Positions 19,795 to 51,597 of a DNA stretch of 54,866 nt are shown piece after piece. The DNA is from Octopus bimaculoides (lineage: Eukaryota). The translations under genes and the position numbers were made by a program. A model generated the notes under the pieces. That model saw only the letters and a list, made by a program, of their open reading frames with translations, was not told the DNA's origin and searched no databases. The DNA lies in NCBI RefSeq assembly GCF_001194135.2, contig NC_069008.1, forward strand, positions 12,010,678-12,065,543. Direction: 5' to 3'. The first letter of the stretch is position 1. Each line of letters starts with the position of its first letter.

Positions 19795-20768
19795 GTGTAT
19801 TTTGCACCAAAAGCCTATAAGTTTCTCTCAGCTCTAACAAGCCACAGTTATCCAGTATTATATGCGGTGAACCAGTCTCCCATCAAAACCTACGGTCAGA
19901 TATCTTTAACTCTAGACCTTGCCTTGCGTCAAGATTTTAAATGGATTTTTGTCATAGCAGACCTGCCACAGCCTATCCTCAGGGCAGACTTCTTATACCA
20001 CTATTCACTCCTGGTAGATGTCAGGAAACAGAGACTTGTGGATACTACCGCATCTTTATCTACGCCTGCATGTGAATCTACCGCTGCTATCCACAGCCCA
20101 TCATTTTTTGTAGCTGTTGCCAATAACCAGTTTCCCGAGTTAATGGATCTATCATTTAAGCCTACTCAGACAGTCTGCTCGACTCAACACTTTATTACAA
20201 CAACTGGTCCACCCGTTTTCTCTCATCCACATAGACTAGTGCCAGACAAGCTCAAGAAAGCCCACGCTGAATTCGAGCACATGCTCCAGCTTGGTCTTAT
20301 ATGTTCTACTAGCCCTTGGGCATCTCCGCTATACCTAGCTGGGAAGGGTGAAGCGGGTTTTAGACCCGTTGGTGATTACAGGAGACTTAATGCTATCACC
20401 ACACTTGATCGTTATCCCCTACCCAACTTAAAGGATTTTTCTTATGTTCTCCATGGTTGCTCTATATTTTCCAAAGTGGATCTGATATGTGCGTACCACC
20501 AAATCCCAACGAACCTGGAAGATATATCTAAAACTGCCGTAACCACTCTGGTTCATTCTGATTCCTATCTATGCCTTTTGGTCTGAGAAATGCTGCCAGT
20601 ACATTCCAGCGTTTCGTCGATGAAGTTGTACACGGATTGAATTTGTTTGTTTTTGCTCATGTAGATGACCTCCTTGTAACCAGCGACACAGTTGAACATC
20701 ATCATCAACATCTATCTCAGTTGTTTCAACGTCTGCGAGCGTGTCATGTAAAGGTCAATTCAGCTTAA
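19795..20768 (+). mobile_element. Gypsy/Ty3 LTR-retrotransposon pol relic (protease C-half plus RT), frameshifted
   Basis: IKTYGQISLTLDLALRQDFKWIFVIADLPQPILRADFL (protease); SPWASPL, FRPVGDYRRLN, DRYPLP, FSKVDL..AYHQIP; after a frameshift MPFGLRNAASTFQR..AHVDDLLV (YVDD changed to HVDD). Confidence 0.9.
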
Positions 20769-25179: not shown

Positions 25180-25395
25180 GAACCCTGCTGTACTCTTTTG
25201 CCACAACTTTCTCTCATTCTTACTTCCTGTTTCTGTTGTGCCTGTAATTCAAAGGGTCAGCCTTGTCACACTGTGTCACGCTGAATATCCCCGAGAACTA
25301 CGTTAAGGGTACACGTGTCTGTGGAGTGCTCAGCCACTTGCACGTTAATTTCACGAGCAGGCTGTTCCGTTGATCGGATCAACTGGAACCCTCGT
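25180..25395 (+). mobile_element. SINE family C, 3' half (head lost in gap)
   Basis: Near identical to 40017-40223. Confidence 0.85.
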
Positions 25396-26657: not shown

Positions 26658-27374
26658 ATGGAAGCAACGTGCAAGAAAAAAGGGCAGGTAACTGAAGGAG
26701 AAAAGGACAGAGAGAAAGAACGTGTGTGATGTTTTTATGTCAGGTGATGAGAGAGGGTAAGGCATGATAAGAGGAACAGGTATGATAGTGTTTGTAGAGT
26801 GAGTAACTGAATAGACATTATTGAGGGATATGTAGAAGTGGTAATGGAGGGAGTAACAGAGACATTGTTGTGGAGGTAAGCAGAATGGACAATGAGAATG
26901 GAAAGGCTAAGGGGTTCTTAGGCGTGTCCAGACCTATGCTACATTATAAGAGCAAGTACAAGCAGATGTGAGGGGGAAGGGAACACGAAAGGAAGAAAAT
27001 AGACAAAGGTGGTGAGGATCTTGAGAGAGTCATTGAAAGAAAGAAGAGATATTCAGTTCTGTAAATTTTTAAATCTACAGTTTTTCTTTATAGGAAAATA
27101 TCCATTGTTGTATCTCTTTTTGAAAAACTAAGTGCATGCCCTCTGTAGGGCTTGTGAAAAGGGCTCCGACTTCTTGGCACTGAAATTCCTAATGAGGCTC
27201 CATCTCCAAAGGGTTAAGATTAGACATATTTACAAAAGAATTTCCAGCATCTAAAGATATCGGCAAATGTCACTGTTGATTGAAATATAGATTTCAATCC
27301 TTCATTTGTTCACTTAAATGTTTATATCTATAGTTTTTTTTTATTATAGAAATGGTTGTAAAATTTCCACTATT

Positions 27375-27766
27375 CTTTCTTTCATTCTTTTATTTGTTTC
27401 AGTCATTTGACCATGGCCATGCTGGAGCACTGCCTTACAGGGTTTTAGTCAAAGAAATCAATCCCAGGACTTATTCTTTGTAAGCCTAGTACTTATTCTA
27501 TCGGTCTCTTTTGCTGAGCCACTAAGTTATGGGCATGTAAACACACCAACATTGGTTGTCAAGTGGGGGGAACAAACACATACATAAACACACACACACA
27601 CATGATAGGCTTCTTTCAGTTTCTGTCTACCAAATCCGCTCTCAAGGCATTGGTTGGCCTGAGGCTATAGTAGAAGACACTTGCCCAAGGTGCCATGCAG
27701 TGGGACTGAACCTGGAACCATGTGGTTGGGAGGCAATCTTCTCACCACACAGCCACACCTGTGCCT
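27375..27766 (-). mobile_element. SINE family A in the ZNF-3 upstream intron
   Basis: Colinear with 7586-7968. Confidence 0.85.
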
Positions 27767-28337
27767 ACTGTATATTCATTTTTTAAGTATCTTCTATAAC
27801 TTACACTGTTGTTTCTCTTTAATTTCAGATTATCAGATGAAACTGGTCTAGAATTTTTACCTCAAGTACATCGTTAATGTGGATTATAAATTGAAAAATA
27901 AAGGGAAATGTTATATAGAACTGATACAAACCTGTTTACATAAATCTGTGATGAATCAACATGTAGTGAAATGTTCATTTTGAACTAGGATCAACAACAA
28001 TGTCTTTCTTCTTCATTATCTGGAATATTGTCATAATTTTGCATTTTAATTAAAACTGGACATATTTACAAAGAGATACCAACACCTAAAGATATCGGCA
28101 AGCATCACTTTTAATGGAAATGTAGTATTTTATAGTAATATTATATTATTTTGTCAGGAATAAGTTATAAAAATGCAAATGAAAAAAATATCCATATAAT
28201 TATATTTGATGAGAAAAGTAAAGTAGTAGAAAAATGAATTATGTGAGAAACTTGGAAGAACTTTGAGGATTGATGATTACCTGAAGAGATTCCAGAAAGA
28301 GTTGGGAAATCATCATTCCATTGTGATATCTATAAAA

Positions 28338-29246
28338 ATGTCTTTCTTGCTAGAATCAAATGTTATTAAACACAAACATATTCATACAGGAGAGAAGCCA
28401 TATCAGTGTGATATTTGTAGTAAATTATTCTCTCATAAATGTGAAGTAATTAGTCACAAACATATTCATGCAGGAAAGAAAGTATATCATTGTGATATCT
28501 GTGGTAAATCGTTCCCTCAAAAGGGTAAACTAGCTACTCACAAGCGTATTCACACAGGTGAGAAGCCATATCACTGTGACATCTGTGGCAAATCATTCTC
28601 TCACAATGGATATTTACCTACGCACAAGCTTGTTCATACAGGAGAGAAACCACATCAGTGTGTTATCTGTGGTAAATCCTTCTCTCTACGTAGCAACTTA
28701 ACTGCTCACAAACGCATCCATACAGGAGAGGAACCATATCAGTGTGACATCTGTGGTAAATCATTCTCTCATAGAAGACCCTTCACTACACACAGACGTA
28801 TCCATGCAGGTGACAGACCATATCTTTGTGATTTATGTGGTAAATCATTTATTGAAAATAGAAACTTAACTACACACAAACGTGTTCATACAGGAGAGAA
28901 GCCATATCAATGTGATATCTGTGGTATATCATTCCCTGATAATGGTCATGTAAAAAGGCACAAACGTATTCATACGGGAGAGAAGCCATATCAGTGTGAT
29001 ATCTGTGGTAAACCATTCTCTGAACCTGGCCATGTAACAAAACACAAACGTATTCACACAGGAGAGAAGCCATATCAGTGTGATGTTTGTGGTAAATCTT
29101 TCTCTGAAATTAGTCATGTAATAAGACACAAACGTATTCATACTGGAGAGAAGCCATACAAGTGTGATATATGTGGTAAATCATTCTCTCTAAACAGTAA
29201 TTTAACAAGGCACAAACATATTCACTCAAGAGAAACCATATCCTGA
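28338..29246 (+). CDS. Tandem C2H2 zinc-finger protein (ZNF-3), 10 intact fingers, paralog of ZNF-2
   Basis: The ORF is open from TTG 28263 and the first ATG is at 28338. Ten CDIC-type fingers, stop TGA at 29244-29246. The upstream acceptor (27827-27828) and leader are homologous to those of ZNF-2. Confidence 0.85.
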
Positions 29247-29420
29247 TTTATGTGGTAAATCATTCTATCGAAAGAGTGATTTAATTGCATACAAATATGT
29301 TCATACAGGAGAAAAGGCTTACCACGATATATCTGTGGTAAGTCATTCCCTTGAAATTTTGAAGTGCCTATACACAAATGTATCCATACAGGAGAGAATT
29401 CATATCAGTGACATACATTA
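29247..29420 (+). pseudogene. Out-of-frame eroded fingers (about 2) in the ZNF-3 3' UTR
   Basis: [27 protein letters not shown].. and a further atccatacaggagagaattcatatcag linker relic. Confidence 0.75.
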
Positions 29421-29730
29421 TAAATCAGTGTTTCTGAATCATTTTTTGACCCCTTTGAATCCCTAGTTTACTCAGATGGACCCTCGTAACCATTCGATGT
29501 TTAAAAAGAATTCTGTTATATTTTTATAATTAAATATTAAGAATTGTATAAAAAAACTTGTTAAAATATTTTGTGTATTGTAGAAACGTAGCCAGTTTAT
29601 TGCAGATAACTGTTAACAACAAAATCTTATATGGAACTCAGTTGAGAGCATCTGTTATAAATCATTTTGTCATAAAAAGTAACTTGATTGAGCATGCAGC
29701 CATTCATTTACAATCAAAATTCATTACATT

Positions 29731-29936
29731 TTAAACCCTTTTGCATTGAATACAGCCCTTGTCTGGCTCAAATATTCTGCCTGTTTTATGTTAAAATTCA
29801 CCAGATCCAACCTTTCACACCTACCCTGCAATGTCATTCCAAAAATATACAAACACACCATTGAGATCTTGAAACTACAAGATAATGCATGATTAATTTA
29901 GAACACTGTAAATAAATAAGCATGCTAAAGGGTTAA
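29731..29936. mobile_element. TTAA MITE (piggyBac-like ends)
   Basis: ttaaacccttttgcatt ... atgctaaagggttaa. Confidence 0.75.
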
Positions 29937-30148
29937 ACCATTTCACCTGCTAAACCAGGGGTTATCGTTGTGGATGTTGCCCATAACATTAATTGTAATG
30001 ATAAACGTCGCCCTTTCAGAGCCTAGCCAGGCTCATGGGCCCGGTTTCCTGGTTTCTATGGCGTATGTGTTCTCCGTGAGACGTTTCAATGCCATAGTAC
30101 AAGAGTTGCTTCCCTTAGCTTTAAGTTTTACGAAGGAATTTAGTGGTT

Positions 30149-30357
30149 CTTTTATCTTATTCAGTCATCAGAATGTGGCCATGATGGGGCACCATCTTGA
30201 AGAATTTCAATCAAACAAATCGGCACCAGTTCTTCCTTTTTTATGCCCAGTACTTTTTTTGTTGGCTTCTTTTACTAAACTGCTAAGTTACGTGAATGCA
30301 AACACAGTAACACCAGGTATCAAGTGATGGTGAGGAACAAACAGACACAAAGCCATA

Positions 30358-30420
<63 letters not shown>
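30149..30420 (-). mobile_element. SINE family A, diverged 3' half ending at its (CA)n(TA)n tract
   Basis: ttcagtcat..tgtggccatg..ggggcacc and ctgctaagttacg..aacaaacagacaca align to family A. Confidence 0.65.
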
Positions 30421-31830
30421 CAAACCACAAACCCCAAACCCCTTCAGGTAGACGGCTCTGCTTGATCTGTAGAAAAGACGTAGGTAGAAATTCCATAAGA
30501 TGTACCCAGTGTAAGCTATAGACACATAAGAGGTGCAGCAATATCAAAGGAAGGCTAACTGGGAAAGTAGTTTTTGTATGTGGCAGATGCTCAGGAGCAA
30601 TAAACACTGTAAACAAACAGGAAACAACTTCTGCCACATTCCAGGGAGAAAAGCTAGAGGTAGTTGGTAGCTTCCGTTACCTTGGTGACCAAGTCAGTAG
30701 CAGGGGAGGGTGCGCTGAAAGTGTAGCTGCTAGAATAAGAAAAGCCTGGGCAAAGTTGAGAGAACTCTTACCTCTGCTGGTGACAAGGGGCCTCTCACTC
30801 AGAGTAAAAGGCAGACTGTATGACGCATGTGTATGAACAGCCATGCTTCATGGCAGTAAAACATGGGCTGTGACTGCTGAGGCCATGCGTAGGCTTGCAA
30901 GGAATGAAGCCAGTATACTCCAATGGATGTGTAATGTCAGTGTGCATACTCGACAGAGTATCAGTACCTTGAGAGAAAAGTTGGACCTAAGAAGCATCAG
31001 TTGTGGTGTGCAAGAGAGATGATTGCACTGGTATGGAGATTTGGCGAGAATGGATGAGGATAGCTGTGTGAAAAAGTGCCACACCCTAGTGGTTGAGGGA
31101 ACCTGTAGAAGAGGGAGACCTGGGATGAGGTGGTGAAGCACGACCTTCGAACATTAGGCCTCACCGAGGCAATGACTAGTGACCGAGACCTTTGGAATTA
31201 TGCAGTGTGTGAGAAGACCTGGCAAGCCAAGCGAGACCATAATCCGTGGCTACTGCCAGGGGTGTAGCCAGACCACTTATGTGTACCTTTCCATCTTTGG
31301 ACACAAAACCCTGCTTGCGAAGACCTGTTGAGGCAAGTGAAATCGAAATCGAAAATTGAACCAAGTTCGTTGACTAGCACCCATACCAACCTTCCTTCAT
31401 TGGACACTAAACTCAGCTTGCAAAGACCCTGTTGGGGCAAGTGACATCAAAACTGAACCAAATTTGATGACTGGCACCCGTGCCAGTGGAGCGCTAACAG
31501 CACCGTCCGAGCAGGATTACTACCAGAGCAGCAGCTTTGCTTCCATGCCGGTGGCACATAAAATGCACCATTTGAGCGTGATTGTTTCCAGCTTCGCCTC
31601 ACTGGCACTTGTTCCAGTGGCATGTGAACAAAACATTGGGCTGACTCCTGCGCAGGTGGCACGTAAAAAGGAAATAAACTACACTCTCGGACTGGTTGGC
31701 ATTAGGAAGGGCATTGAGCTGTAGAAACTCTGCCAATTTAGATTAGAGTCTGGTGTAGCCATCTTGTTCACCAGTTCCCAGTCAAATCGTCCAGCCCATG
31801 CTAGCATGGAAAGCGGATGTTAAATGATGA

Positions 31831-31834
<4 letters not shown>
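30421..31834 (+). mobile_element. 5'-truncated RTE-clade LINE: PHD-like finger, RT thumb/C-terminus, 3' UTR and (GAT)n tail
   Basis: CLIC..CTQC..H..C..CGRC, then KLEVVGSFRYLGDQ, ARIRKAWAKLRELLPLL, KGRLYDACV, LHGSKTWA, QER*LHWYG, RRGRP. Several stops. (TA)n on both sides. Confidence 0.9.
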
Positions 31835-31874
<40 letters not shown>

Positions 31875-33727
31875 TCTATTCAAATTTTAAAAGAACTCCA
31901 AAATTTTGTGAACTTATTTCATTTCAACTGAATTTAAAGTAATACCATATTGGTAAAGTACCAATAAATGCTTTATTATTATTGCTCTCTTTAGTTTTGG
32001 GCCACAGGTCCAGTTAGCTCTCCACGGGAGCTAGTTTAAAAGTCCGCATGGAGTGTGGCTTTTAAGCTAGTATTATATAAAACTACAGCTAAATCCACAC
32101 GTCAGGTGATTTAACTGTATGTTATTGTTAATAAAATCATTCATAAATATTCACTCTAACATATCTCTAGAATTGAGAAAATATACTATTGATTTATTTG
32201 ACAATGTGGGTAAATAATTGAAGAATGTACTTCTATAAACCGGATATAACATTGCTGTACAGTTATTATATTACAAACAAACAGATAGAACATGAAAGAA
32301 AATACTTCATTAGACCATAGACAAATATATGTAGAATATTTTACATATATTCTGAATCTCATACACATTCTTTCATGTATCTTATGTAAATCCTGGTTTA
32401 AATTTTGTTTTGTATATATCCCATCAAAGGAATGGTTCTTTTTTTTGTTGGGATTTATATACCGTTCTCATTTCTTTTATTTATAGCATAATTCCTTTGT
32501 GAGTTAATGGTTAAGTTCAATATTTATTTACAAACATGATCATAACAGTTAATATAATATGAAGTGATATAATTTGCAAACCATCATTATTGTTGCAGTT
32601 GATGTTTTAATGTCCATTCTCTGTGCAGACATGGCTTCACTGTGCCTGTCGTGCAATATATCGCCTCGTTTTCTCAATATTTTGTTGTCTCAGTTTTAAG
32701 TTCCAGAATCCAGACATCTGGCTTCATGACACTTTATGAATGTTCTTATTAAACCTGAAATCTGAATAAATCTGGTTTCCTCTGTCATTCTGCATGTATC
32801 ACATTTAAGCAAATTGGGTGCTGACACAACCCTAAATTGTAGAATTCACAAACTTGATCAATCTATGATAAAAGTTGTGCATTTCTCTGACTGATCTACA
32901 GTAACAGTTTTATTTAAAAGCTAGATATTTTCCGTTGACATTATCTGATATTAGAGGTTATCATACATTGAATGAGAGATAAACAGTGGGATAATTTTGT
33001 ATATTAAGATATGATATATGTTGTTATCTAGTCAATATGTGATTAAACCAGCTAAATGTATTGAAAAGACATTTCCCAATGTCTAATAATGTTAAAATGT
33101 GATACATATTGCTGTATAAGAATTGAATTTATGTTAGTTTGACTTTATCTTACACAGATGTGAAATCAATTGAGAAAGTCCACCAGTAATATTTTGTGGT
33201 GAAACCATCACAATATATCATGCCAAACAAAGACATGTGATAGTGTCTAAATTGGTTATTTCATATTACTCTGTAAGGAGTATAAGGCACCAACTTCATT
33301 GCTGACTTCCAAATGGGTATTTTTCAATGAAGTTTTCTACAAATGTGCTTCAGATGATATAAATTCTGATTATATTGGAACTTATGTTGAAAACATTTTT
33401 AAGAGGGTGGAGTGAGGAGTTTCAGAATATTTCACATGAGTCGACTTTGTTTCCTCCTAAGTTCTGAAAGAAGTGGGCATTTTTTTTTACAGTGTGGCTG
33501 TATGGTAAGAAGCTTGCTTCCCAACAACATGGGTACATGTCTGAAGTAGATTTCTTCAATCAGCTGGGTCTAATTGTCAATATACATTGCAAGAATATCA
33601 TTTGGCTGGTACTTATGTACCAAGTTTGATATTTACTTGATAATGTGTGTGTATATCATTCTGACCTAACGGAATACCTCAATTTAAGTGCCTAATTCAA
33701 CTTAATCTTACTTATATATATATAAGT

Positions 33728-35589: not shown

Positions 35590-36045
35590 TGTATATATAA
35601 AAAATGCACAAAAAATACAAAAATGGGACAAGAATGCAAAACATCCAGACAGTTAGGTGATACAAAAAAGGGACAACAAACCATCCAGACAGATGATACA
35701 AAGAAAACAAGGATGGGTCATTCGGAGTTTTCTATCCTCAGTCAAGTTCCACATTATCTTTGCAATTTCTGCTGGTTATACTTGAGATTGCTCCAATCTG
35801 GCCTGCCCCAAGGAAAAACTAAGCTTAGAGCATTAGATTCCTTGGAAGACAGCAGCGAATGGCTACGAAAACAAGGACGGAAAAAAAACCCCAGAGAAAT
35901 GTTACACAAATACAAATGTAATTAACAGGACATAACAACAAGTGTCTTTCGACTAAGGACAAATTAAATTATGCTGGTGTGTGTAGCAGTAAAGTCTTAT
36001 GGCAGGGACATAAGATTTAATAGGCACAGGGAGGAATATAGATGT
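35590..36045. repeat. Probable interspersed repeat of unassigned class, with internal direct repeats (aaacatccagacag..gatacaaa twice)
   Basis: Internal duplication is visible and there is a sharp junction with the pseudogene fragment at about 36045. The class cannot be established from this window. Confidence 0.45.
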
Positions 36046-36722
36046 AACTGTAATATCCTGGATCACATTGTTATAATTTCTACTATTTTCTTTGTCTCTT
36101 GTTAGTAATATTTCAGTTATGTCTATTTGTTTCATTTCATTCACAGTTTAAATGAATTTCATCAATTTAAATGACCCACAAACTACAGCCATTTCCACAT
36201 CTACTACAACACACCAGTTGACTGTTAGGAGTGATACATTCATAATAATTTCTCGTTTGGTAAATTACCAATGACAATGGAAATTCCACCTTTAATGTCA
36301 ACAGTTGGTTTTTATTATTATCATTCATAATAACCAGTGTGTTTGACTGCCATCGACACATATTGATATTGTAACCAGCATATAATTTGATAGAATCCAG
36401 AAGTTGACCATCAAATGTGAATAACTTAATGTTTTCATTCTTCCAGTCGTATCCTGCAACCAGGTTATTTTCATTAATAACCAAACGATAAATCTCCATG
36501 GGTCCTTTATCTCTAAAATCTGGGGGTGGGGGTGGGGGTGTCATCAACATGAATATGTCTGCCTTTATCAGAAACTGTCAGATCCTGTAGATATAAAGAT
36601 GACAACATTTCACTGAGAGAAATGTTTCTGGAAAATACATCTACCAGGTCGATATAAATATTGAGTTGATTATTTGTAACGAGATCATTAACCAACAAAT
36701 TATGATCGTTTATAGCAAACAT
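36046..36722 (-). pseudogene. Paralog fragment 1 of the multi-propeller gene (end of module B plus first half of module C)
   Basis: MFAINDHNLLVNDLVTNNQL..LYLQDLTVSDK / NENNLVAGYDWKNENIKLFTFDGQLLDSIKL..MCRWQSNTLVI..LLTLKVEFPL / KQIDI..IQDITV aligns to 45189-45840. One frameshift near 36520-36545, another near 36150, and a TAA at 36167. Confidence 0.92.
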
Positions 36723-36734
36723 ATGGCATTGTCT

Positions 36735-37140
36735 AGGCGCAGGAGTGGCTGTGTGGTAAGTAGCTTGCTTACCAACCACATGGTTCCGGGCTCAGTCCCA
36801 CTGCGTGGCACCTTCGGCAAGTGTCTTCTACTATAGCCTCGGGCCGACCAAAGCCTTGTGAGTGGATTTGGTAGACGGAAACTGAAAGAAGCCTGTCGTA
36901 TATATGTATATATATATGTGTGTGTGTCTGTGTTTGTCCCCCCTAGCATTGCTTGACAACCGATGCTGGTGTGTTTATGTCCCCGTCACTTAGCGGTTCG
37001 GCAAAAGAAACCCATAGAATAAGTACTAGGCTTACAAAGAATAAGTCCCGGGGTCGATTTGCTCAACTAAAGGCGGTCCTCCAGCATGGCTGCAGTCAAA
37101 TGACTGAAACAAGTAAAAGAGTAAAAGAAAAAAAAAAAGA
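36735..37140 (+). mobile_element. SINE family A, full length
   Basis: A-box and B-box-like head, internal TA/TG tract, (gtaaaaga) and polyA tail. Confidence 0.88.
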
Positions 37141-37639
37141 GAGATCCACCATAGAGATTGGGGCAAGGGTTCATTTGGCACAGTAAAACACTGGGGACCA
37201 TCTTAATACTGCTACTATTACCATCACAACAACTACTGCCATGACCGCCACCATCAATGCTAGTATTGTACTGAAAGGCTTTTCTTATGTGTATATGTAT
37301 GAGTCATCAATGTTGTGCGTGTATGATAACCTACTTAAAAAGCCAAGCAATCTGCAGTTACTTCAGACTCTGAATAATATATCTCTCACCTCCACTTCCC
37401 ATTTACTTCTACATTCTTTCTTTTGACCTCTATCTCTCTCTCTCACTCCTTTCTGTCTTTACACCGCAGCCACAGCCGCCGCCAACACCACCACCACTAC
37501 TACTACTACTACTACTCAACCTGTTTTAATACAATCAGTGAGGAAAAAAAAGTGTGGGAAGTTTTGGCCCATTTACATAAAAGTATGTGTGCCTCTGAAT
37601 ACATACACACAGCAATACCTATATACACGTTCATACCTA

Positions 37640-38040: not shown

Positions 38041-39889
38041 TAGGCATTCCATCAGTTACAACAACAAGGGTTCCAATTGATCCTATGAATGGAACAGCCA
38101 GTTTATGAAATTAATGTGCAAGTGGCTCCACACCAGCTAGACTAACATCGAAAGATTGCCCACTATGACACAACATACACATACATACACACTCCAACAC
38201 ACATTTGATGAAATATACTTATACATGCTCACACACTTTTAAACAAAGCTACACTCACACACTACACAAAAATGATACAATAGCATTCACATATCAACCT
38301 CTTCCTGCTATGTTATAAATATCTCCATGACAGTTGTAGAAGTCACTGTTTTACCTCTGTTTTGAACAAATTGATACTTCTGACACAGAAAGACTTCAGG
38401 CAGAAATTGAAACCCAAATATTGACTCTGGTAAATATCATTGCAATTATTATTTTAATTAACAAATGAATTACTAACATATTTACACCATTAAAAATGCT
38501 AGAGCTACTTCACATTAGAGAAGGATGAATTAGCATAGTATCACAGAATGTCTTTGGTCAAATTATGTAAAAGTAATTTTACAAATTAAATAGTTTTAGA
38601 TTTTGATCTTTCAAAGGAAATTCAAAATTTGCAAATTAATTTTACAGATATAAAATATAGATTTTGCTTTCTTCATATAGTTTAATGGAATTTCTTAAAT
38701 AAACCTCCGGCTTTCAGCAAAGCAAGGAAATGATTTAAGTCAATCTTTACTTTTATGCTTATTATTCAACAGTAATTTGATTACTTTGCTAATTAAATTT
38801 GTGTACATTAATAGAAATCAAACTGTAATATAAGTGGAGAATTAATATTATTGGCTTTTCAATACATATTTATCCAATGTTAACTCCTTTATGTTAACTG
38901 TAAGGTGAGTTGGCAAAGTTATTAGCACATTTTTACGGAAAACTGTATTTGCTCAGAGTTCAATACCTCGCGGGGTTGACTTTACTTTCCATTATATTTT
39001 TATGGTCGAAAGGAACCAGTCAAATATTGGAGTAAATCTGTCATCATTGTTGTTGTATTATTTGTCTTCCTCCTCTACGACTTTTCTCTTTCTATGTGGA
39101 AGACATTGACAGGGGTTACACATGTAGGGAGAAAGTCTCATCCAGATTTGTAATGCCTTAAACACATTGTATGTCACACTGGAAGACATTAGCAGTAGGT
39201 GGGTGTGGAGAAGGATTTCCCCAGATTTCAGGTGTTCTAAGCATGTTATATGGTACACTGATATCCTTAAGGCTCCATTAGGTGAACAGAGCTGAAGAAA
39301 TGGCTTTGAATATAAACACACATAATTATTATTTTAACTGTCATTTTTCAAAAGACAGGGACTTTAAAAATTCTTGTCTCAAAAAACTTTCCTTCACTGC
39401 TTTGCAGTGCATGAAAAAAGGGGAAAATCCTGACAAAAATGGGGAAATTCTAACTTATATAGGACAGCTATTCTGAAAGTCTGTTTTTCCAGTTTCCAAT
39501 AAAGGGTTCCAGTGGGGAACAATGAGTAATATTTACTGCATTACCTTATGTCTTGAGGAAACACTGAATATCTGATATATTTAACAAAGCTAGTATCATT
39601 TTGTAGATACACTAATATTTATTATATTTAATTATCTTAATTATTTTTATCTTCTAATTATTGTTACTGATATTATTACTATGTTGTTGCTGCTATCATT
39701 ATTATTTAAATTTAAATCTTTGATTAGGTTATTTCTTAATTATTATATAATTCCTTTTAAAATTTTCTTTTTCCATTTTATTTTTTATTTTAATTCTATT
39801 TTTTATCTTCACCATACTACAATTTAAAAGAAAAATTTATTCCTTGAAGAAAAATATTTTTTCAAAATAGGATATCTACCTTAGTGAAT

Positions 39890-40223
39890 GTGGAGGCACA
39901 ATGGCCCAGTGGTTAGGGCAGCGGACTCGCGGTTTCGATTCCCAGACCAGGCGTTGTGAGTGTTTATTGAGCGAAAACACCTAAAGCTCCACAAGACTCC
40001 AGCAGGGGTGGTGGCGAACCCTGCTGTACTCTTTCACCACAACTTTCTCTCACTCTTACTTCCTGTTTCTGTTGTGCCTGTAATTCAAAGGGTCAGCCTT
40101 GTCACACTCTGTGTCACACTGAATATCCCCGAGAACTACGTTAAGGGTACATGTGTCTGTGGAGTGCTCAGCCACTTGCACGTTAATTTCACAAGCAGGC
40201 TGTTCTGTTGATCGGATTAACTG
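39890..40223 (+). mobile_element. tRNA-derived SINE family C, nearly full length
   Basis: gtggaggcacaatggcccagtggttaggg head and ggtttcgattccc B-box. The 3' half is near identical to 25180-25395. Confidence 0.85.
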
Positions 40224-42403
40224 TGGTGAATGATGTATCAATTATATTTCTATAGAATTCTCATTAACTCAACTTGTCTTCTACTCATAGTTAATATTTA
40301 GAATTATTATTGACCAAATCAAATTTTCCCCATAACCAAATAATATATCTACTGAACAGCTTGTTTCTGCTTACCAGCTCCGTATATTTGAATAGGTCAA
40401 TAGCAGTTCAAATGGGATAGAAATTTTGCTGTATCCAATCAGGATCAAATAAATATTATTCATAAGCAGGTCTGCTGAAATACCTCCTAATCCCTTGTAC
40501 TGGTCAAATATTGTTAGTTTTACAACTATCTCTCTCCCTTAAAATGTTTTCTGTTCCAAGCAGCATGGCATAACTGCGATAAAGATAGGATGGTATTAAA
40601 TTTTCTATTTTTGTAAATCTTATATCAATTGCTGCATCACAGAATTTTGGAATTTGGCAATCTATCTAAAACATACATAAATGCTTACTTAAATATACAA
40701 CTACTTAATTCTCCATTCTTTTACATGTTTCTGCTATACTCTGTGACCTTATATTAAATTTATTCAGTATTTGAACATTGCGCTTACAAAATGGACAGGC
40801 AGCAGAAAGAAAATTTACGGTCTTCCTGGATTACAATGGTTTTCACTGGACAATTTAATTAACAAAGAGTGATTCCTATAGACTGTTTATAAAGTTTTCA
40901 CCTTCAGAATTATAAAGCTAAGATAATTATTACGTAGTTTTGATGTGATTTTCTTCCCAAAAGTAAACCGTGTAGAATGGCACAGGAAATATAAACATGA
41001 ATCCCGTTTAATTTTACAGTTGAAATATTTACTGTTATCTGGTTTATGCTTCATGGAATTTCTTGTCGACAACAAAAGCAATAACAACAAAATAGCTTTA
41101 TTCTATAAAATAAAATGATATCAATGTATCTGAAATATATGTTGTAGTCTTGTCCATATATATTCAGAAAGCTGAAATCATTTTGCATCATTTTGCCTTT
41201 CATCCCACCTTGATCAAAAGAATAACAGTCACTATTTAGAAGATGAAGGTGGAGGAGAATGATTATGAAGGTGGTTTTATGAATCACCAGAATATCATTA
41301 AACACCCCACCAATATTTCCTAATCCACCTCATTAAACCCCCAATACTTCTTAATAAACTACAATGGTTATATTTCCTCACCTAACACAAAACAAAACTC
41401 ACTTCACTTGCCAAATCCATTTTCTATACAAATATGTTTCTCATTGCTACCTGAACACTATATCTTATATTAAATGTGATTAGGATGAACCTATTTTTCA
41501 TTAATTGTGATTATTGCTACTATATATAAATCATTAACCAATCTTTATTATCTCAATCAGGAACAAATAATAACGATCCTCTCAACATGCTGTGTATCAG
41601 TGTGATTATATGAAAGCCCATTTTTTGATAAGCTTTCCAAGTTTAATCAATGTTGTCTATGATAATTGTGTGGATTATATTGGAATGTTGAGAGATTTAC
41701 AGCATTTGTCAGGTTAAGAACCAGTTTCATCTCCAGCTTTATTGATATCTCTTCATCTAAGTAAATATGATGGAAACTAAGCCAACCATGACGGTCCCAT
41801 CATTTCCAGTATATATAATCATTAGTAATACTTATATTCCATCTAATAAGCAAGATGTTCAGTCTGTCTTGTATCTGACAACTTATATGAAGCATAACGT
41901 CTATGTTTTGCTAATTGTTCCATGTTCATGAAGTTTGAACATAATTACCATGAGTGTGCTGTGGCGTACCCCATGTATATCAATTAAATTTAACTTTCTC
42001 TACAGTTTAGAGTATCTCATTATTGAATACTTTCAAGGGCAAGTAAATCTGTAGACCAATTATTAAATAAATCTAAACCAGACATGGCTATTAATTTGTG
42101 ATGTTGACGAAAAATATCATTTCCAGTGAGTATAATTATTGCTAATATTTAGACTCCATGTAACTAGTGAAACTTATTAATACATCCAATAATAGAATGT
42201 AATTAGATGTTTATTTCTAATAATTATTATTCCCACAAGAAGTTGTTTAAATATTAATTTAACAACCTAATACACTGACAGAAATACATTAATCTTTTGT
42301 TTGTGTGTTTAGAATAATGAAGTAAACATTATCTCCCTGAAACTTTAATGTTTTCACAAAGTTGAATGTTTTTTTTTCACTTATATTTCATTATAGATTC
42401 ACT

Positions 42404-45400
42404 ATGGAAGACCAAACAAGAAATACTTTAAGAACACTTATATCTCTGAAAAGAGTTTTTCGTGACTCAACAACAAAATATGATGAAGAAAGAGTTCACA
42501 AAAAAATGCGTAGATATGAGGGAGATGATGGTTCAAGGAGAAAAATGTCAAAGAAACGACCTTCACCTGAGTCAACAACAAAACAAAAAAGACATAGAGG
42601 GGACCATAAAAAGAGGGAAATAGCTGAAAGACAAGATGTTTTTGACAAACATATATATTATACAAGATTCAATGTATATGAAGACAAAATTGATATGTTG
42701 ATAAATTCTCAGAAAGAAATATGTACTTTTTTAAAACGTATAGGATTAGATACAAATAACTTTCTACAAGATTTTACACAGAGAATCGACATTTTGATGA
42801 AAGACATTAAGGAAAACGATTACAATCAAGAATTTATTATTATCAGAAAACTGGAATTGTTCCTGAAACACTATTTGAAGACAAATGTTTTACAAGACAA
42901 GCACAAGACAATTGAGGCACCAAAAATAATCAATAAATTTCGATCTCTTTCTTCAGTTGTGACTACAGAAGCAGCGATAGTTGGATCTGGTGAGGATATA
43001 GACAACATGGTATCCAAAATTGTTGTCATACAAGGAGGAATAGTGACATATTCCCGCCATTGTCTGACAATATNNNNNNNNNNNNNNNNNNNNNNNNNNN
43101 NNNNNNNNNNNNNNNNNNNNNNNNNNNNNNNNNNNNNNNNNNNNNNNNNNNNNNNNNNNNNNNNNNNNNNNNNNNNNNNNNNNNNNNNNNNNNNNNNNNN
43201 NNNNNNNNNNNNNNNNNNNNNNNNNNNNNNNNNNNNNNNNNNNNNNNNNNNNNNNNNNNNNNNNNNNNNNNNNNNNNNNNNNNNNNNNNNNNNNNNNNNN
43301 NNNNNNNNNNNNNNNNNNNNNNNNNNNNNNNNNNNNNNNNNNNNNNNNNNNNNNNNNNNNNNNNNNNNNNNNNNNNNNNNNNNNNNNNNNNNNNNNNNNN
43401 NNNNNNNNNNNNNNNNNNNNNNNNNNNNNNNNNNNNNNNNNNNNNNNNNNNNNNNNNNNNNNNNNNNNNNNNNNNNNNNNNNNNNNNNNNNNNNNNNNNN
43501 NNNNNNNNNNNNNNNNNNNNNNNNNNNNNNNNNNNNNNNNNNNNNNNNNNNNNNNNNNNNNNNNNNNNNNNNNNNNNNNNNNNNNNNNNNNNNNNNNNNN
43601 NNNNNNNNNNNNNNNNNNNNNNNNNNNNNNNNNNNNNNNNNNNNNNNNNNNNNNNNNNNNNNNNNNNNNNNNNNNNNNNNNNNNNNNNNNNNNNNNNNNN
43701 NNNNNNNNNNNNNNNNNNNNNNNNNNNNNNNNNNNNNNNNNNNNNNNNNNNNNNNNNNNNNNNNNNNNNNNNNNNNNNNNNNNNNNNNNNNNNNNNNNNN
43801 NNNNNNNNNNNNNNNNNNNNNNNNNNNNNNNNNNNNNNNNNNNNNNNNNNNNNNNNNNNNNNNNNNNNNNNNNNNNNNNNNNNNNNNNNNNNNNNNNNNN
43901 NNNNNNNNNNNNNNNNNNNNNNNNNNNNNNNNNNNNNNNNNNNNNNNNAAAGGCCCTTTAATAAAGGTCCACTCTGATTACGTTAAAATATGTAATATTG
44001 TATCAAATAAGTGTTTGGCTCTGATCACCAGAGAAAACAAATATGAGGTCCATATCCTATTGATTAAGGAGGAGGAAGTTGAAATCACACAAAAAATTTC
44101 CCTGGAACACGATAATGTCACCATTGCTGCAACTCCAATTAATTTTGTAGTCATAGATGGAAAGAAGCATAAATTGGTATTTTATTCGACAAGTGGTGAA
44201 GAACTTTTTGAAAAATACCTTCCATTCTATGGCTACCCTCATCACATCTACTCTGATAATGTTTATTATTATGTCCTGTTCAAGAGACAGTCGATTGTTG
44301 CATGTTATGATATATATGGAGAAATTAAATGGCAGTGGAAACTACCTTTCCCTGTTCACCCTCACATTGCTGTTTTCCAAGGAACTTTTTATGTGCCAGA
44401 TGTTGAACTCAACAGAGTTCTTCTTTACAAGTATAACGACTGGTCTGGATGTTGTTTACGCATCAAAAATCCTTATATCAGAAATCTAAATCTACGACTC
44501 AAAGAAAAGCAGAATGACAAAAAACTTCTCATTGCCAAAATATGTCATCTGGCAAATGGACAGTTGNNNNNNNNNNAAACTTCTCATTGCCAAAATATGT
44601 CATCTGGCAAATGGACAGTTGGTGGTGTCCGACATCAACCATGATTGCTTGTTATACATTTCTAATGAAGGAGACATTGTGTCTACATTATCTTTGCCAT
44701 CTTTAGCTACAGATATATGTCGATGGGATTCTAATCAAATAGGTGTCACATTACCCCTACAGAAACAATTAAGGGTCATTGGAAACCTATCAAAGACAGT
44801 GAGAAGTGTATCATTAAGGCAGCCTTATGTATGGGTGTGTAAGCTGGGTAAAGGTCAAATTGTTTGTAATTGTGATAAACCATCTCGTTTAGATATTTTA
44901 GCCATTAAAAATTATAATCAAGCTGAAATAATTCATAGAATTAATATTCCATTTGTAGTGAAATCACTATCAATAGAAAATGAAACACTAAAACTATTAA
45001 TTGTTACTAGGGGAAAAGCTTTTCAGTACAACACTAGAATAGATGGTGGTGGTCATGGCACTGGTGATCATCATCCTTGTAGTATTAAGATGGTCCCCAG
45101 TGTTTTAATGTCCCAAGTGAAACGTCCCCTCAATCTCTACGGTGGATCTATTGACCAAATGTTTGTATATCTTATAGAGAACAGCCGTATGTTTGCTATA
45201 AACGATCATAATTTGTTGGTTAATGATCTCGTTACAAATAATCAACTTAATTATTATATCGACCTGGTAGATGTATTTTCCAGAAACATTTCTGTCAGTG
45301 AAATGTTGTCATCTTCTTTATATCTACAGGATCTGACAGTTTCTGATAAAGCCAGACGTGTTGTTGTCCCTCCCGATTTGGCAGACAATCAATCAGTGAG

Positions 45401-47753
45401 CATTTGCTGTTCAGTTATTACTGAAAATAATCTGATTGCAGGATACGACATTAACAATAAAAACATCAAGATATTAACATTTGATGGTCAATTTCTGGAC
45501 TCTGTCAAGCTGAATGGTAATGATGTTAAAATGTGTCGATGGCAGTCAAACACACTGGTCATTACAACTGATGATGACAAACATGAATTATTGACACTAA
45601 AAGTGGAATTTCCATTGTTACTGGTGAATTACCAAACGAGAAATAAATATCAATGTGTTGCTTGTTTGTCTGACAATCTACTGGTGTGTAGTACATGTAG
45701 CGATAAACTCAGTTTGTATATCACCAGTATTGATGAAATGCATTCAGCTGTGAATGTACTACAACAAATTAATATACCTGAGGCATTAACGCAGGAGACC
45801 AATGTTAATTACATTTATTACATCTGTGATATTATAGTTACAGCTAATGATGTCATCATTGTCAACAATAAAAGATTCATAATTTTCTTCAACAGTGATG
45901 GTCAATATTTACATTCAGTTAGACACTATATGCAGCATACCAGTTATTATAACAGGATGACGAGTGATGACAGCTTTTTGTACATTAATAGTCAGTGGGA
46001 AAGATCTAGTGGCCTCTACAATCAATATGATAAGATAGTATGCTTCAACCAGACTGGTGAATACAACCGGATATTTTTAAAGAGAATTTATAAATATGAA
46101 ACAGATATTTCCAACATGAACTGTAAAGGACCAACATTTATTGGAAGCCATTGGAGTAGCAATTGTAATAAACTCTATGTTGAAGGTCTGTTTAGGTTTA
46201 ATCGGGAAAGATTCTCTGTTTCTCGTTTACAAACAGACGAATTTCCTGTTCAAGTAAAAGATTTTGATATTTCTGATGAAGGAAAGACAGTTGTATGTGA
46301 AAAAGCCAATAATGGAAATGTTAAAATATTTGATGAGGATGGGGAGTTGCTATGTTGCAGAAATGTTGGAAGTTTAGTTGGTGGTGTGTGTTTTACACAA
46401 GAAGGAGACATAATGGTCACAGTTCCTAAAAGACAAGAAGTATTTCAACTGAAGAAACAAGATTTGAAGAAATATAAAACTTGGGAAAGTCAAGTACCCT
46501 ATTTAGTAATATGGAGAAAAGTGGGAAATATTTACTGGTGTGTACATATTAACTTGATTGACTGTGATGGTATAAAGATTGATGGGGACCAAGTGAACAT
46601 TCTGGAATCTGTGTCGTTATTAAATCTTGATTCTGATTTTCATTTCCCTTCCATGACATCTCAAATGAACAAGGAAATATTCACTAGTGAATTAATTAAT
46701 AAAGTGAAATACACTGGAGGAGATGAAGGAGGAGTAAGAAGAGGTAAATCAGGTGAAATAATTGGTCACGGTAGATTAAAGGTAAGATGTGGTAATTTCA
46801 TGGCAGTGAGTATGCGAGGAATTGATGAAATATCAGTGAGGAGACTGCCACATAGAACAGCAATGATCCCTCTTTCTATTCCTACATGTGTTGAACCTGT
46901 TAATTATGATGATAATAGAGACTACAACAGCAAACTAATTAAGTTAGATGACGATGTCTATGTGTTGCTGTTTAGAGACACTGTCACATTAATCAGTACA
47001 ACAACAGGTGACATACTTCAACATAAACAATTACCACAACAACCACTAGGTATATGTCGATGGACGGATCAATGTTTCATAGTCATCTTTGGTAAAGAAA
47101 TGGTGGTCTTCAATAGAGATCTTTGTCATTTAAAAACCATCAACACTGAGAAATACTACAACAGAATTTATAAATACAACGTCAATCAACTTGTGTGTGG
47201 TGGTCATTATGTTAAAGGCAGAAATGAAGGTGGAAAATATAACTATTGTTATTATGTAGATATAGTCGATATTGATGGCAGAAGATGTAAATACAGTCGG
47301 GAAGTGTGTTCTGGGGAGGTGAAGGTAGAGGAAGAGGTGGTAGTGATGTTTGATTTAGCAGTGACATCTGATGGTAATATTATCATTGGGAAGTGGGAAA
47401 GCGAGGAATTGGAGCAACGGAATAATGATGGTCACTATGAAATCTTCTGGTACAAGGAACATTTGGTCAGAAGTATAAAAGTACCGAGATATGCAAATTA
47501 TTATATTCACAAGCCTTATCTAACCACACATCATGAATGTATTTATACAACAGATGCAGATAACAATATTTACGAAATCCCTGGACATATTGAATACCAA
47601 ACATCCAAAGATCTTGAAAAATATTTACTCCTCAGGGGTGAAGATAATGAAGTCTATAAAGTTCTTGGCTTTGACATTTCAGACAATTCTTTTATGGTTT
47701 TTGGAATAATCCCAGGACGTCATTCTTTTGCTTTCTTTCATTATGACAAATAA
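42404..47753 (+). CDS. Large (~1760 aa nominal) apparently single-coding-exon protein: basic N-terminus, helical region, 5-6 tandem NHL-like beta-propeller modules; function unknown
   Basis: Acceptor ttatAG at 42395-42396, ATG at 42404, open to the gap at 43074. Open again from 43949. The 45-nt sequence 44522-44566 is repeated at 44577-44621 across 10 N. Removing 55 nt joins track ORFs 42362 and 44514 into 1249 stop-free codons ending TAA 47751-47753. Repeated motifs: DICRWDSN / KMCRWQSN / GVCFTQEG / GICRWTDQ and Y-x2-[IV]-x7-[LI]VC-like. Confidence 0.85.
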
Positions 47754-47939
47754 ATATTTTCATAAATATTTGTTGTTGTTGTTACTGGGCACACTTTGGA
47801 ATTGATCTACGCTGCTCACACTGCATTCTACACTAACAATTACAGTTGTAACATTCTTCAAGACACGCACATACACGCACGCACTACCTCTCTCTCTTCT
47901 TTCCTCTTCTCTGTTCTCTTTCCTTCTTCCTCTCTTGCC

Positions 47940-48718
47940 TTTCTCTTCTTCTTCTTCTTCTTCTTCTTCTTCTTCTTCTTCTTCTTCTTCTTCTTCTTCT
48001 TCTTCTTCTTCTCTGTCTTCTCTTTCTCTCTCTGTGTCTTCTCTCTCTCTCTGTCTTCTCTCTCCCTCTCTCTCTGTCTTCTCTCTCTGTCTTCTCTCTC
48101 TCTGTCTTCTCTCTCTCTGTCTTCTCTCTCTCTCTGTCTNNNNNNNNNNNNNNNNNNNNNNNNNNNNNNNNNNNNNNNNNNNNNNNNNNNNNNNNNNNNN
48201 NNNNNNNNNNNNNNNNNNNNNNNNNNNNNNNNNNNNNNNNNNNNNNNNNNNNNNNNNNNNNNNNNNNNNNNNNNNNNNNNNNNNNNNNNNNNNNNNNNNN
48301 NNNNNNNNNNNNNNNNNNNNNNNNNNNNNNNNNNNNNNNNNNNNNNNNNNNNNNNNNNNNNNNNNNNNNNNNNNNNNNNNNNNNNNNNNNNNNNNNNNNN
48401 NNNNNNNNNNNNNNNNNNNNNNNNNNNNNNNNNNNNNNNNNNNNNNNNNNNNNNNNNNNNNNNNNNNNNNNNNNNNNNNNNNNNNNNNNNNNNNNNNNNN
48501 NNNNNNNNNNNNNNNNNNNNNNNNNNNNNNNNNNNNNNNNNNNNNNNNNNNNNNNNNNNNNNNNNNNNNNNNNNNNNNNNNNNNNNNNNNNNNNNNNNNN
48601 NNNNNNNNNNNNNNNNNNNNNNNNNNNNNNNNNNNNNNNNNNNNNNNNNTCTCTCTCTCTCTCTCTCTGTCTTCTCTCTCTCTCTCTCTCTGTCTTCTCT
48701 CTCTCTCTCTCTCTCTCA
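47940..48718. repeat. (TCT)n and (CT)n / CTCTGTCTT simple repeats around a 510-N gap
   Basis: Direct reading. Confidence 0.95.
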
Positions 48719-48769: not shown

Positions 48770-48920
48770 TACATACATATAGTTTTCGCCTACCAGATCC
48801 ACTCACGAGATTTGGTCGGCCTGAGGGTATAATAGAAGACACTTGCTCAAGGTGTCACACAGTGGGACTGAACCATGTGGTTGTGAAGCAAGCTTCTTAC
48901 CACATAGCCACGCCTGTACT
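48770..48920 (-). mobile_element. SINE family A head half (diverged)
   Basis: ctaccagatccactcac..gaagacacttgctcaagg..agcttcttaccacatagcc. Confidence 0.75.
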
Positions 48921-50789: not shown

Positions 50790-50975
50790 GCTATTTGTAC
50801 CATGAATATACAAATAACTGTCATCAATAGTCATATTGTTATAACCAAAATAATCCAAATAGTGTCCCACTGAATGTAAATATTGACCATCACTATTGAG
50901 GGAAATGATGAATATGTATTTTCCGACTGGTAAATTAGCGTCGACAGTGGAAATTCCATCTTTAATGGCAACAGT
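50790..50975 (-). pseudogene. Paralog fragment 2 of the multi-propeller gene (middle of module C)
   Basis: TVAIKDGISTVD..KYIFIISLNSDGQYLHSVGHYLDYFGYNNMTIDDSYLYIH vs gene IVTANDVIIVNNKRFIIFFNSDGQYLHSVRHYMQHTSYYNRMTSDDSFLYIN. The nucleotide run agtgatggtcaatatttacattcagt is identical. Confidence 0.85.
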
Positions 50976-51597
50976 TAGTTTTTATTGTGCAGCGAGAATC
51001 AGTCCTTCAATTTCAACTTTTAATCCAGAGCTTTTGAGCCGTCGTTGGTTTAAAAGCTGACCTGTTCTCAGTCAAGCCTTGCAGAGTATTGGCCATAGAG
51101 TGATTTTTCACTCCATTTCTTCTTTGGTATTTTGTAAATCCTGTTTCCATGTTTTTTTTTGTTGTTGTCACTTTGACCATTTCTGCCATGTCATCTGAGG
51201 CCAGTGTGCCAGTGTAGCTTGTTTCTGTTTTGTATTATGTCACCTCCTTGTGTGTATATAGAGAAAAGCGTTTTCTTTTTCTCATGTTGCTTTACTGCAT
51301 GCAGTAGTCTTCCACTCTTTGTTTCTAAGTACTTTCCTAGTCCAACTGTTGGCATTTTATACTAGTTCTCTATATCAGGTCACGGCCTCCTTCTGAATGG
51401 GGTAGATATATTCTGTCTGCGTCTGATTTGTGGTGGTGATTTTGGTACTCTGTTAGTTCTTTTCTAGTTTTTCTATCTAGGTTTCCCAATTCACCGGTCT
51501 GTTATGTTAAAGCTATAATTCTTTGACTGGTATGGCTTGCGTGTTTGTCTCTATTATCTGTTTTTTAGCATTAAGTTCAGTGTTTAATATTAGCGTT
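50976..51597 (-). mobile_element. R4/Dong-clade (RLE-type) non-LTR retrotransposon fragment, decayed
   Basis: LILNTELNAKKQIIETNTQAIPV, LDRKTRKELT..HHKSDADRIYLPHSEGGRDL, WSEKSLYGQY, RLKSSGLKVEIEGLILAAQ. Confidence 0.8.

Follow-up and report, generated by a model that had tools for sequence, protein, structure and literature searches.

What kind of protein is encoded by a reading frame of about 5.3 kb in which short motifs return every few hundred residues and in which domain searches find nothing? The question is raised by a forward-strand gene at 42404-47753 of a 54,866-nucleotide window from Octopus bimaculoides (RefSeq assembly GCF_001194135.2, contig NC_069008.1, positions 12,010,678 to 12,065,543 of the forward strand). 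The window is the whole stretch of DNA analysed here, and coordinates refer to it unless another locus is named. A preliminary description made from the letters alone had proposed an uncharacterised tandem beta-propeller protein with five visible and probably six modules. We conclude with high confidence that the locus holds one gene with a single large coding exon, whose product strings together six propellers of the NHL type. It belongs to a family known only from octopods.

A gene interrupted by assembly gaps

The gene runs on the forward strand from an ATG at 42404 to a TAA at 47751-47753 and is interrupted by gaps of 875 N (43074-43948) and 10 N (44567-44576). The smaller gap has the same 45 bp on both sides, 44522-44566 being an exact duplicate of 44577-44621. 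Once the Ns and one of the two copies are deleted, the stretch from 43949 to the TAA (hereafter part B) comprises 1,249 codons without a stop, while its other two frames contain 81 and 158. The repaired junction aligns without gaps to P0005, a paralog from the same species, and the paralogs hold the 45 bp once. The duplicate is therefore a contig-overlap artefact, and the stop-free frame of the preliminary description is confirmed.

Upstream of the larger gap, part A extends from the ATG to 43073, for 223 codons and one further base. In alignments with five full-length paralogs (1,660-1,913 aa), it matches their N-terminus, and part B matches the rest of each protein. Because both sides of the gap are colinear with these proteins, they form one gene of about 1,770 aa, as had been supposed. 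Each of the five paralogs places 301-305 residues between the two parts, which would need about 902-915 nt, within about 4% of the 875-N estimate. As written, the gap also keeps the frame (one leftover base plus 875 N make 292 codons); this proves nothing, since the number of Ns is merely estimated. In total, 1,472 codons of the gene are visible, all free of stops, and the content of the unread portion is predicted from the paralogs.

The sole database protein 100% identical to the product is the O. bimaculoides entry A0A0L8H207_OCTBM in UniRef (P0001). This public model of 1,051 aa covers only the last 1,044 residues and misses about the first 700. Compared with 44577-47753, its first seven residues are read from the duplicated 45 bp, so that the model starts inside the duplicate because of the contig-overlap artefact. 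Truncated by assembly artefacts, it should measure about 1,770 aa.

The coding sequence is uninterrupted in P0005 (5,352 nt) and in P0053 from Argonauta hians (5,742 nt), and in P0002 from Octopus vulgaris residues 3-1788 lie in a single block. Among the Octopus copies, conservation extends about 170 nt 5' of the ATG, including a polypyrimidine tract, and similarity stops about 150 nt downstream of the gene on the 3' side. The 5' stretch contains the following feature:

42395-42403, forward strand: conserved 3' splice acceptor (AG at 42395-42396 after the polypyrimidine tract) and 7 nt of 5' untranslated region (UTR), within a block TTTCATTATAG/ATTCACTATG common to the paralog locus L001 (O. 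bimaculoides) and to L002 (O. vulgaris).

The acceptor AG, 7 nt 5' of the ATG, is invariant, the Argonauta locus L003 included, and the frame upstream of the ATG closes 42 nt before it. The coding part of the gene thus consists of a single large exon, preceded by a probable 5' UTR intron; this bears out the single exon of about 5.3 kb described previously. The conserved acceptor and the upstream tract argue that it is not an intronless gene of the retrocopy kind.

Repeats, fold and propeller class

The internal repeats are visible in the protein itself. C-R-W occurs at part B residues 239, 511 and 1018 (positions 44718, 45534 and 47055) and C-F-T at residue 796 (46389), with spacings of 272, 285 and 222 aa between consecutive sites. 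A recheck returned exactly the motif coordinates and spacings reported before. Composition alone predicts 0.02 C-R-W per protein, and none of 20,000 shuffled sequences contained three or more. Five Y..C motifs stand at part B residues 11, 275, 549, 833 and 1052. Six stretches of about 125 aa are in register with one another in family profiles and in every full-length paralog, and each comprises three successive blades, termed X, Y and Z. Blade X, with the pattern I..(L/I)..NG.(L/I)VV.D...N..(L/I)..(F/I)...G, is a canonical NHL repeat; blade Y follows T-D-I-C-R-W....(I/V).VTLP, and blade Z follows Y..(I/V)C.......(L/I)VC (also Y..C......C). Whole-module comparisons with hhalign gave pairwise profile matches of E 3e-6 to 3e-4, partial and mostly confined to junction blades, and self-BLAST of the window protein detected no internal repeat. 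The segment MVSKIVVIQGGIV, just before the large gap, is equivalent to the blade that opens the first propeller of the paralogs, and its register agrees with that of the five remaining X blades. It had been taken for the start of a sixth module, and both this and the total of six modules hold.

Structure prediction agrees with the repeats. An AlphaFold2 model of part B residues 192-1249 (1,058 aa; 62 family sequences) is almost purely beta, with about 84 short strands and a mean predicted local distance difference test score (pLDDT) of 70.6. A second AlphaFold model, of P0005 residues 1-563, covers what the gap hides and has the following organization:

Residues 1-33: disordered.
Residues 34-134: four helices, pLDDT 50-75.
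Residues 135-169: disordered linker, low pLDDT.
Residues 174-390: six four-stranded blades, pLDDT 85-91.
Residues 402-413: low-confidence linker.
From residue 422: the next propeller.

Comparison of the part B model with the PDB using Foldseek yielded more than 1,000 matches with E of 0.001 or less, the listed ones being propeller proteins without exception. The top matches are multi-propeller chains (LRP2/megalin, DDB1, ROS1/Sevenless, IFT-A and UTP proteins; E 1e-19 to 1e-15). These four-stranded, nearly all-beta blades, together with matches to beta-propeller proteins only, provide evidence for the propeller array of the preliminary description. Each module corresponds to one propeller of about 230-300 aa that opens with blade X, and the parts of the gene are as follows:

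42404-42628, forward strand: start codon and basic, probably disordered stretch (aa 1-75; isoelectric point 10.5) with motifs resembling nuclear localization signals, KKMRRY..SRRK and KRHRGDHKKR; the P0005 equivalent is disordered, pLDDT 25-42.
42629-42898, forward strand: N-terminal helical region, aa about 76-165, matching the four helices of P0005 residues 34-134.
42899-43012, forward strand: linker with a family-conserved K-F-R motif (KHKTIEAPKIINKFRSL...), identified by conserved columns and by the low pLDDT of P0005 residues 135-169.
43013-43073, forward strand: propeller 0 as far as the gap, which cuts it after strands a and b of blade X0 (DNMVSKIVVIQGGIVTYSRHCLTI); in register with the other five X blades, and beta in the P0005 model at pLDDT 85-91.
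43074-43948, no strand: assembly gap, estimated at 875 N; expected to contain what remains of propeller 0, followed by blades X1-Y1 of propeller 1, from the 301-305 residues of the paralogs and the P0005 model.
43949-44521, forward strand: visible propeller 1 (part B aa 1-191), with the end of Y1, Z1 (YVKICNIVSNKCL) and three more NHL-like blades; P0005 residues 494-563 form strands, and the last three blades follow from the sequence pattern only.
44522-45395, forward strand: propeller 2 (part B aa 192-464), with X, Y (TDICRW, 44718), Z (YVWVCKLGKGQIVC) and two to three more blades; DSSP strands at model residues 4-208 and 260-263, pLDDT 77-85.
44567-44621, no strand: assembly artefact inside propeller 2 and outside the gene, 10 N plus the second 45-bp copy; exact duplicate, single copy in paralogs.
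45396-46247, forward strand: propeller 3 (part B aa 465-748), six blades, CRW at 45534; 23 strands (4+4+4+4+4+3) at model residues 276-536.
46248-46925, forward strand: propeller 4 (part B aa 749-974), with X, Y (C-F-T, 46389), Z, an insertion and one three-stranded blade, from DSSP and pLDDT.
46926-47753, forward strand: propeller 5 (part B aa 975-1249), six blades, CRW at 47055, TAA at 47751-47753; 23 strands (4+4+4+4+4+3) at model residues 786-1057, pLDDT mostly 78-92.

Counted by strands, there are six blades in each of propellers 0, 3 and 5 and five to six in propeller 2; by sequence pattern, propeller 1 has six. The insertion of propeller 4 (46626-46787) is a Gly/charged, low-confidence stretch of 54 aa. 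Propeller 2 holds the most conserved blades of the family and ends in a conserved non-beta segment, DLVDVFSRNISVSEMLSSSLYLQDLTVSDKAR (45222-45323; part B aa 407-440), which lies between propellers 2 and 3. Few segments of the family are as conserved as this one, in which 11 positions do not vary even when Argonauta is compared, yet it is strand-free in the model at pLDDT below 50. It could serve as a functional linear motif, or as a plug.

The N-terminal helical region is the most variable part of the family. It has no match in Pfam, its profile finds nothing significant among PDB sequences (best E 0.014, designed helical binders), and a hidden Markov model (HMM) search found no similarity to the N-terminal parts of the RING/B-box/NHL relatives described below. 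No RING or B-box was found by Pfam in the window protein or in the five full-length paralogs at E up to 1-10. The N-terminus is hydrophilic, and no signal peptide or membrane segment was found, in agreement with the earlier reading; in a hydropathy scan, the highest 19-residue Kyte-Doolittle mean is 1.33.

Since direct searches with single sequences (Pfam and phmmer, the latter without any match among PDB sequences) gave nothing, profiles were needed to determine the class of the propellers. Against all PDB sequences, the X-Y-Z profile matches the NHL domains of TRIM2 (E 1.7e-10, 44 bits in one stretch), TRIM3 (E 6.7e-7), Brat (E 1.2e-6), TRIM71 (E 8.8e-5) and Mei-P26 (E 2e-3). We also searched 1.84 billion representative proteins exhaustively with HMMER, using a family profile of 1,144 positions. 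The 24 matches with E <1e-10 are all from Octopus or Argonauta, except for two short fragments (ENA, MetaClust) without a species record. The tail outside octopods is weak (E 4e-5 to 6e-4), and its named members come from Mytilus, Potamilus, Sinanodonta and Sepia pharaonis. When ten of the tail proteins were scanned with Pfam, 5 of 10 exceeded the NHL cut-off and 4 of 10 had a RING and/or B-box at E of 0.01 or less; WD40 and Ldl_recept_b are listed for none of the ten, and weak SGL and Vgb_lyase matches occur. A profile of a single module (propeller 3) aligns over positions 3-231 of 285 to the sole C-terminal propeller of a Sepia RING/B-box/NHL protein (P0092), and the module profile spans about 215 residues of the relatives' one propeller. 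Owing to these profile matches and to the molluscan RING/B-box/NHL relatives, we regard the modules as diverged NHL-type propellers. This supports, at the profile level, both the NHL assignment of the preliminary description and its background of molluscan B-box proteins with a single propeller, the only kind of relative found outside octopods.

The comparison with known systems sets the family apart. The X blade is a recognisable NHL repeat of the kind found in TRIM2, TRIM3, TRIM71/LIN-41 and Drosophila Brat and Mei-P26, and the TRIM-NHL proteins are intracellular, as is predicted for the octopod protein. However, the TRIM-NHL proteins have one six-bladed C-terminal propeller behind a RING, B-box and coiled coil, whereas the octopod chain carries six propellers, and Pfam detected neither RING nor B-box in it. 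Its predicted N-terminal helices show no similarity to theirs, and the Pfam NHL model does not detect the octopod family. Molluscan RING/B-box proteins (for example Sepia pharaonis CAE1315789.1, Mytilus VDI39367.1, Potamilus KAK3588083.1) are the only relatives found outside octopods among the 1.84 billion representatives. The octopod module aligns from the first blade of their propeller, although these proteins have 280-860 aa, one propeller and an N-terminal RING and/or B-box, compared with 1,660-1,913 aa, six propellers and an unrelated N-terminus. In the most likely scenario, a complete molluscan TRIM-like NHL propeller was duplicated serially within one protein to give rise to the family, and the RING and B-box were lost.

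In overall structure, the best match to the whole model (E 1e-19 to 1e-15) is provided by the ectodomains of the LDL-receptor family (LRP2/megalin, LRP4, LRP6) and of ROS1/Sevenless, which likewise have several six-bladed propellers. These proteins are extracellular, with a signal peptide and with EGF or other modules between their YWTD propellers, whereas the octopod propellers abut directly. DDB1, the adaptor of the CUL4 ubiquitin ligase, ranks high in Foldseek; it is intracellular, as is predicted for the octopod protein, and likewise made up almost entirely of consecutive propellers. It differs in having three seven-bladed WD40-like propellers and in being single-copy and conserved across eukaryotes, and it has no sequence similarity to the octopod protein.

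Copies, divergence and neighbourhood of the family

In a first search, 64 of 64 matches were octopod proteins, named 'uncharacterized' or 'hypothetical', and almost none of the 64 has an entry in the precomputed Pfam field. The exhaustive search supports the proposed restriction of the family to one lineage. The family is known only from octopods (Octopus species and Argonauta), where dozens of copies, including pseudogenes, lie in tandem or inverted clusters. The majority of the O. vulgaris copies are on one 29-Mb chromosome record. At the O. vulgaris locus L002, four copies lie within 43 kb, at 3903-9346 (reverse strand), 10418-15739, 27567-32924 and from 38182 (all three forward). One of the four is frameshifted, two are intact, and one, 39% identical to its neighbour, sits in an annotated 'intron' of P0002. 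A 33-kb stretch comprises the frameshifted copy, the 39%-identical copy and P0002, and another copy begins 5 kb further on. The proteins closest to the window product are just 67-69% identical to it, whether they come from the same species or from O. vulgaris. The two paralog relics that had been noted near the gene were both located:

36040-37303, reverse strand: relic 1, frameshifted, matching P0005 aa 823-1117 (tblastn frames -1, -2 and -3, 57-85% identity), with an interspersed repeat inside it at 36734-37126.
50799-50989, reverse strand: relic 2, short and degraded, matching P0005 aa 1023-1054 and 1113-1167 in two frames at 45-50% identity.

Divergence was measured pairwise with the Nei-Gojobori method, in 100-codon windows and in loop classes, as the ratio of nonsynonymous to synonymous substitution (dN/dS). 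Against P0005, part B gives a ratio of 0.49 and part A one of 0.75, with all 100-codon windows at or below 0.81. By neither 100-codon window nor loop class does it rise above 1, and positive selection was thus not found. The family had been called fast-evolving; this stands as moderately raised dN/dS, and not as any value above 1. Copies are both gained and lost in the family, which evolves under moderate constraint. The synonymous component dS is a mosaic that ranges from 0.09 to 0.95 (window 43949-47750 against L001 11481-15349), with values of 0.09-0.3 over part B aa 1-450 and 700-1050 and of 0.6-0.95 over aa 450-700 and 1055-1249. This pattern suggests gene conversion or recombination among copies.

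Variability among the copies is unevenly distributed over the propellers. Successive loops of a propeller lie on opposite faces, and the split into two faces is independent of the assumed strand phase. In 25 full-length paralogs, the b-c/d-a loops have a mean entropy of 1.57 bits, compared with 0.90 for the a-b/c-d loops and 0.92 for the strands (Mann-Whitney p 2e-10). The b-c/d-a face is net basic in propellers 2-4 (+3 to +5), and the other face carries -3 to -10.

The gene lies within a cluster of C2H2 zinc-finger genes, and an O. vulgaris gene model (P0015) fuses both kinds. Three zinc-finger open reading frames (ORFs) of 480, 316 and 327 aa are intact in the window (5344-6786, 15211-16161 and 28263-29246, all on the forward strand), with Pfam matches to zf-C2H2 and zf-H2C2_2 at E 1e-50 to 1e-109. 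A 263-aa ORF at 19795-20586 (forward) has a weak RVT_1 match (E 3e-4) under the Pfam cut-off and probably represents the remains of a retroelement. Interspersed copies of a repeat of about 420 bp number at least seven in the window (7584-7974, 11084-11276, 12529-12674, 27371-27779, 30148-30421, 36734-37126 and 48781-48916), and the repeat is also present at L001 15597-16033; one copy lies within relic 1, and others lie shortly downstream of the window gene and of P0005. Another repeat, of about 215 bp and 88-94% identity, is found twice in the window (25180-25394 and 39889-40223) and in both orientations upstream of the L001 paralog (6885-7102 and 8767-8998); it could be an inverted-repeat element. 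A (CTT)n and then (CT)n-rich microsatellite at 47880-48139 begins about 130 nt past the stop codon of the gene and extends to the next assembly gap.

Candidate function and competing explanations

TRIM-NHL propellers bind RNA or proteins via their top face, which is the b-c/d-a face. By analogy, each propeller of the octopod protein may offer this face to a ligand, RNA or protein, and the protein as a whole would be a non-enzymatic, multivalent binding platform inside the cell, either cytosolic or nuclear. Gene duplication followed by divergence of the b-c/d-a face would then yield paralogs with different specificities. This explanation, which blends the anatomy with a proposed mechanism, is the best overall, and we consider it somewhat favoured. 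For its functional part, a binding scaffold or sensor rather than an enzyme, the chances appear about even.

Several observations weigh against the six-propeller NHL reading or against the mechanism. Pfam, including the NHL model PF01436, reports nothing significant on the window protein or on the five paralogs. With the 1,058-aa and 563-aa models, Foldseek cannot separate NHL from WD40 or YWTD propellers, and tandem-propeller chains of all classes come first; its TM-scores are low (0.1-0.4), owing to differences in how the domains are placed relative to one another. Blade numbers and ring closure rest on strand counts, with five clear blades in propeller 2 and about four confident ones in propeller 4, and propeller 0 of the window gene sits in the gap, its form being taken from the paralogs. 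On the variable face, dN/dS is 0.47-0.83 and dS is raised too; for this reason, diversifying selection is not shown.

The NHL signal could reflect a generic similarity between blades, the propellers being of the WD40 class or of the YWTD class (LDL-receptor class B). Among PDB sequences, a Nostoc WD40 repeat protein (2ymu) and the designed WRAP-T propellers indeed score best with the X-Y-Z profile (E 1e-36 to 1e-22), and the top Foldseek structures include LRP2, a YWTD protein, and the WD40 arrays of DDB1 or the UTP proteins. These WD40 scores, however, are sums over as many as 13 near-identical repeats of 6-14 bits each, with single-repeat E values of about 0.5-95 in the two matches printed, and we discount them on this ground, whereas TRIM2 reaches its 44 bits in a single stretch. 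Neither WD40 (PF00400), Ldl_recept_b nor EGF has a Pfam match in the window protein or the five paralogs, three WD40-type propeller families appearing only below threshold (E 0.017-0.26), while half of the ten distant relatives pass the NHL cut-off. Counts of six blades fit NHL or YWTD propellers, not seven-bladed WD40, and the EGF modules and signal peptide of LDL-receptor proteins are missing. We therefore hold a class other than NHL to be quite improbable. A little less probable still is that the window copy is two genes, or a pseudogene with a defect inside the large gap. About 300 codons are unread, two decayed copies lie in the same window, the public model spans only the last 1,044 residues, and an identical product is not on record in the gene calls of the newer assembly. 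Nevertheless, both flanks are intact and colinear with full-length paralogs across a gap of the right size, the visible codons are stop-free with a dN/dS of 0.49-0.75 rather than 1, and the 45-bp duplication explains the truncated model.

The protein could also serve as a structural scaffold or adaptor in the manner of DDB1, holding for example parts of a ubiquitin ligase, with copies that are redundant and not diversified in specificity. The presence of this three-propeller adaptor among the best Foldseek matches, the RING and B-box domains of the relatives, typical of E3 ligases, and a dN/dS below 1 everywhere, which fits conserved partners, all agree with this. Dozens of paralogs that are 40-70% identical and vary on one loop face would be unexpected for a housekeeping scaffold, the family was not found outside octopods, and no RING, B-box or other partner-recruiting domain remains according to Pfam, so that we regard this role as unlikely. 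Enzymes similar to six-bladed lyases or lactonases (PAL, SMP-30/gluconolactonase, virginiamycin B lyase) are a very improbable alternative: virginiamycin B lyase is in the Foldseek list (TMt 0.54) and distant relatives have the weak SGL and Vgb_lyase matches, but no family member reaches an enzyme family of Pfam, the nearest sequence matches are non-enzymatic TRIM-NHL domains, and six catalytic domains in a row with freely varying surface loops would be odd. Hardly credible, in our view, is a selfish multi-copy ORF of transposon or virus origin. The intronless coding sequence, the dozens of clustered copies with many pseudogenes, gene models fused to hAT-like or zinc-finger domains, and the repeats and reverse-transcriptase fragment nearby are what it would lead one to expect. 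Against it, Pfam finds no transposase, reverse-transcriptase, integrase or capsid domain in the ORF; the copies are old, diverged (40-70% amino-acid identity) and under purifying selection; their homology ends about 130 nt beyond the gene on the 5' side and 150 nt on the 3' side, and the splice acceptor is conserved; terminal repeats around them were not noticed, although no systematic search for these was made. A viral origin was dropped, as matches in a viral structure library were generic propellers only.

Within the binding-platform reading, the preliminary description had pointed to an immune or RNA-binding role, which is pure inference; immune or anti-transposon sensing specifically appears doubtful. 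The most far-reaching version is speculative and, in our judgement, unlikely to be correct: octopods would possess an intracellular receptor repertoire of dozens of hexa-propeller proteins, each with six diversified NHL faces, recognising polyvalent targets, either nucleic acids or proteins, that are non-self or selfish, for example RNA from viruses or transposons. Specificities would be shuffled by recombination and gene conversion among the paralogs. If true, such a repertoire would be analogous to the NLR or TRIM expansions of other animals, on a different scaffold.

Literature searches by topic and by locus name found no description of the family; one paper on bivalves, which reports an expanded B-box orthogroup, is only tangential.

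NHL propellers are well studied as RNA- and protein-binding modules and, to our knowledge, invariably form a single terminal domain of a TRIM-type protein. While the fold is known, we could not find an earlier description of six abutting NHL propellers without RING or B-box, nor of the family itself, whose genes are present in databases only as unnamed predictions, with no Pfam domain, name or paper. A family profile could annotate many octopus proteins that are now 'uncharacterized'. Cephalopod innate immunity and genome defence are poorly understood. If the variable faces bind ligands, the family would represent a natural example of multivalent propeller arrays and a lineage-specific recognition repertoire in cephalopods.

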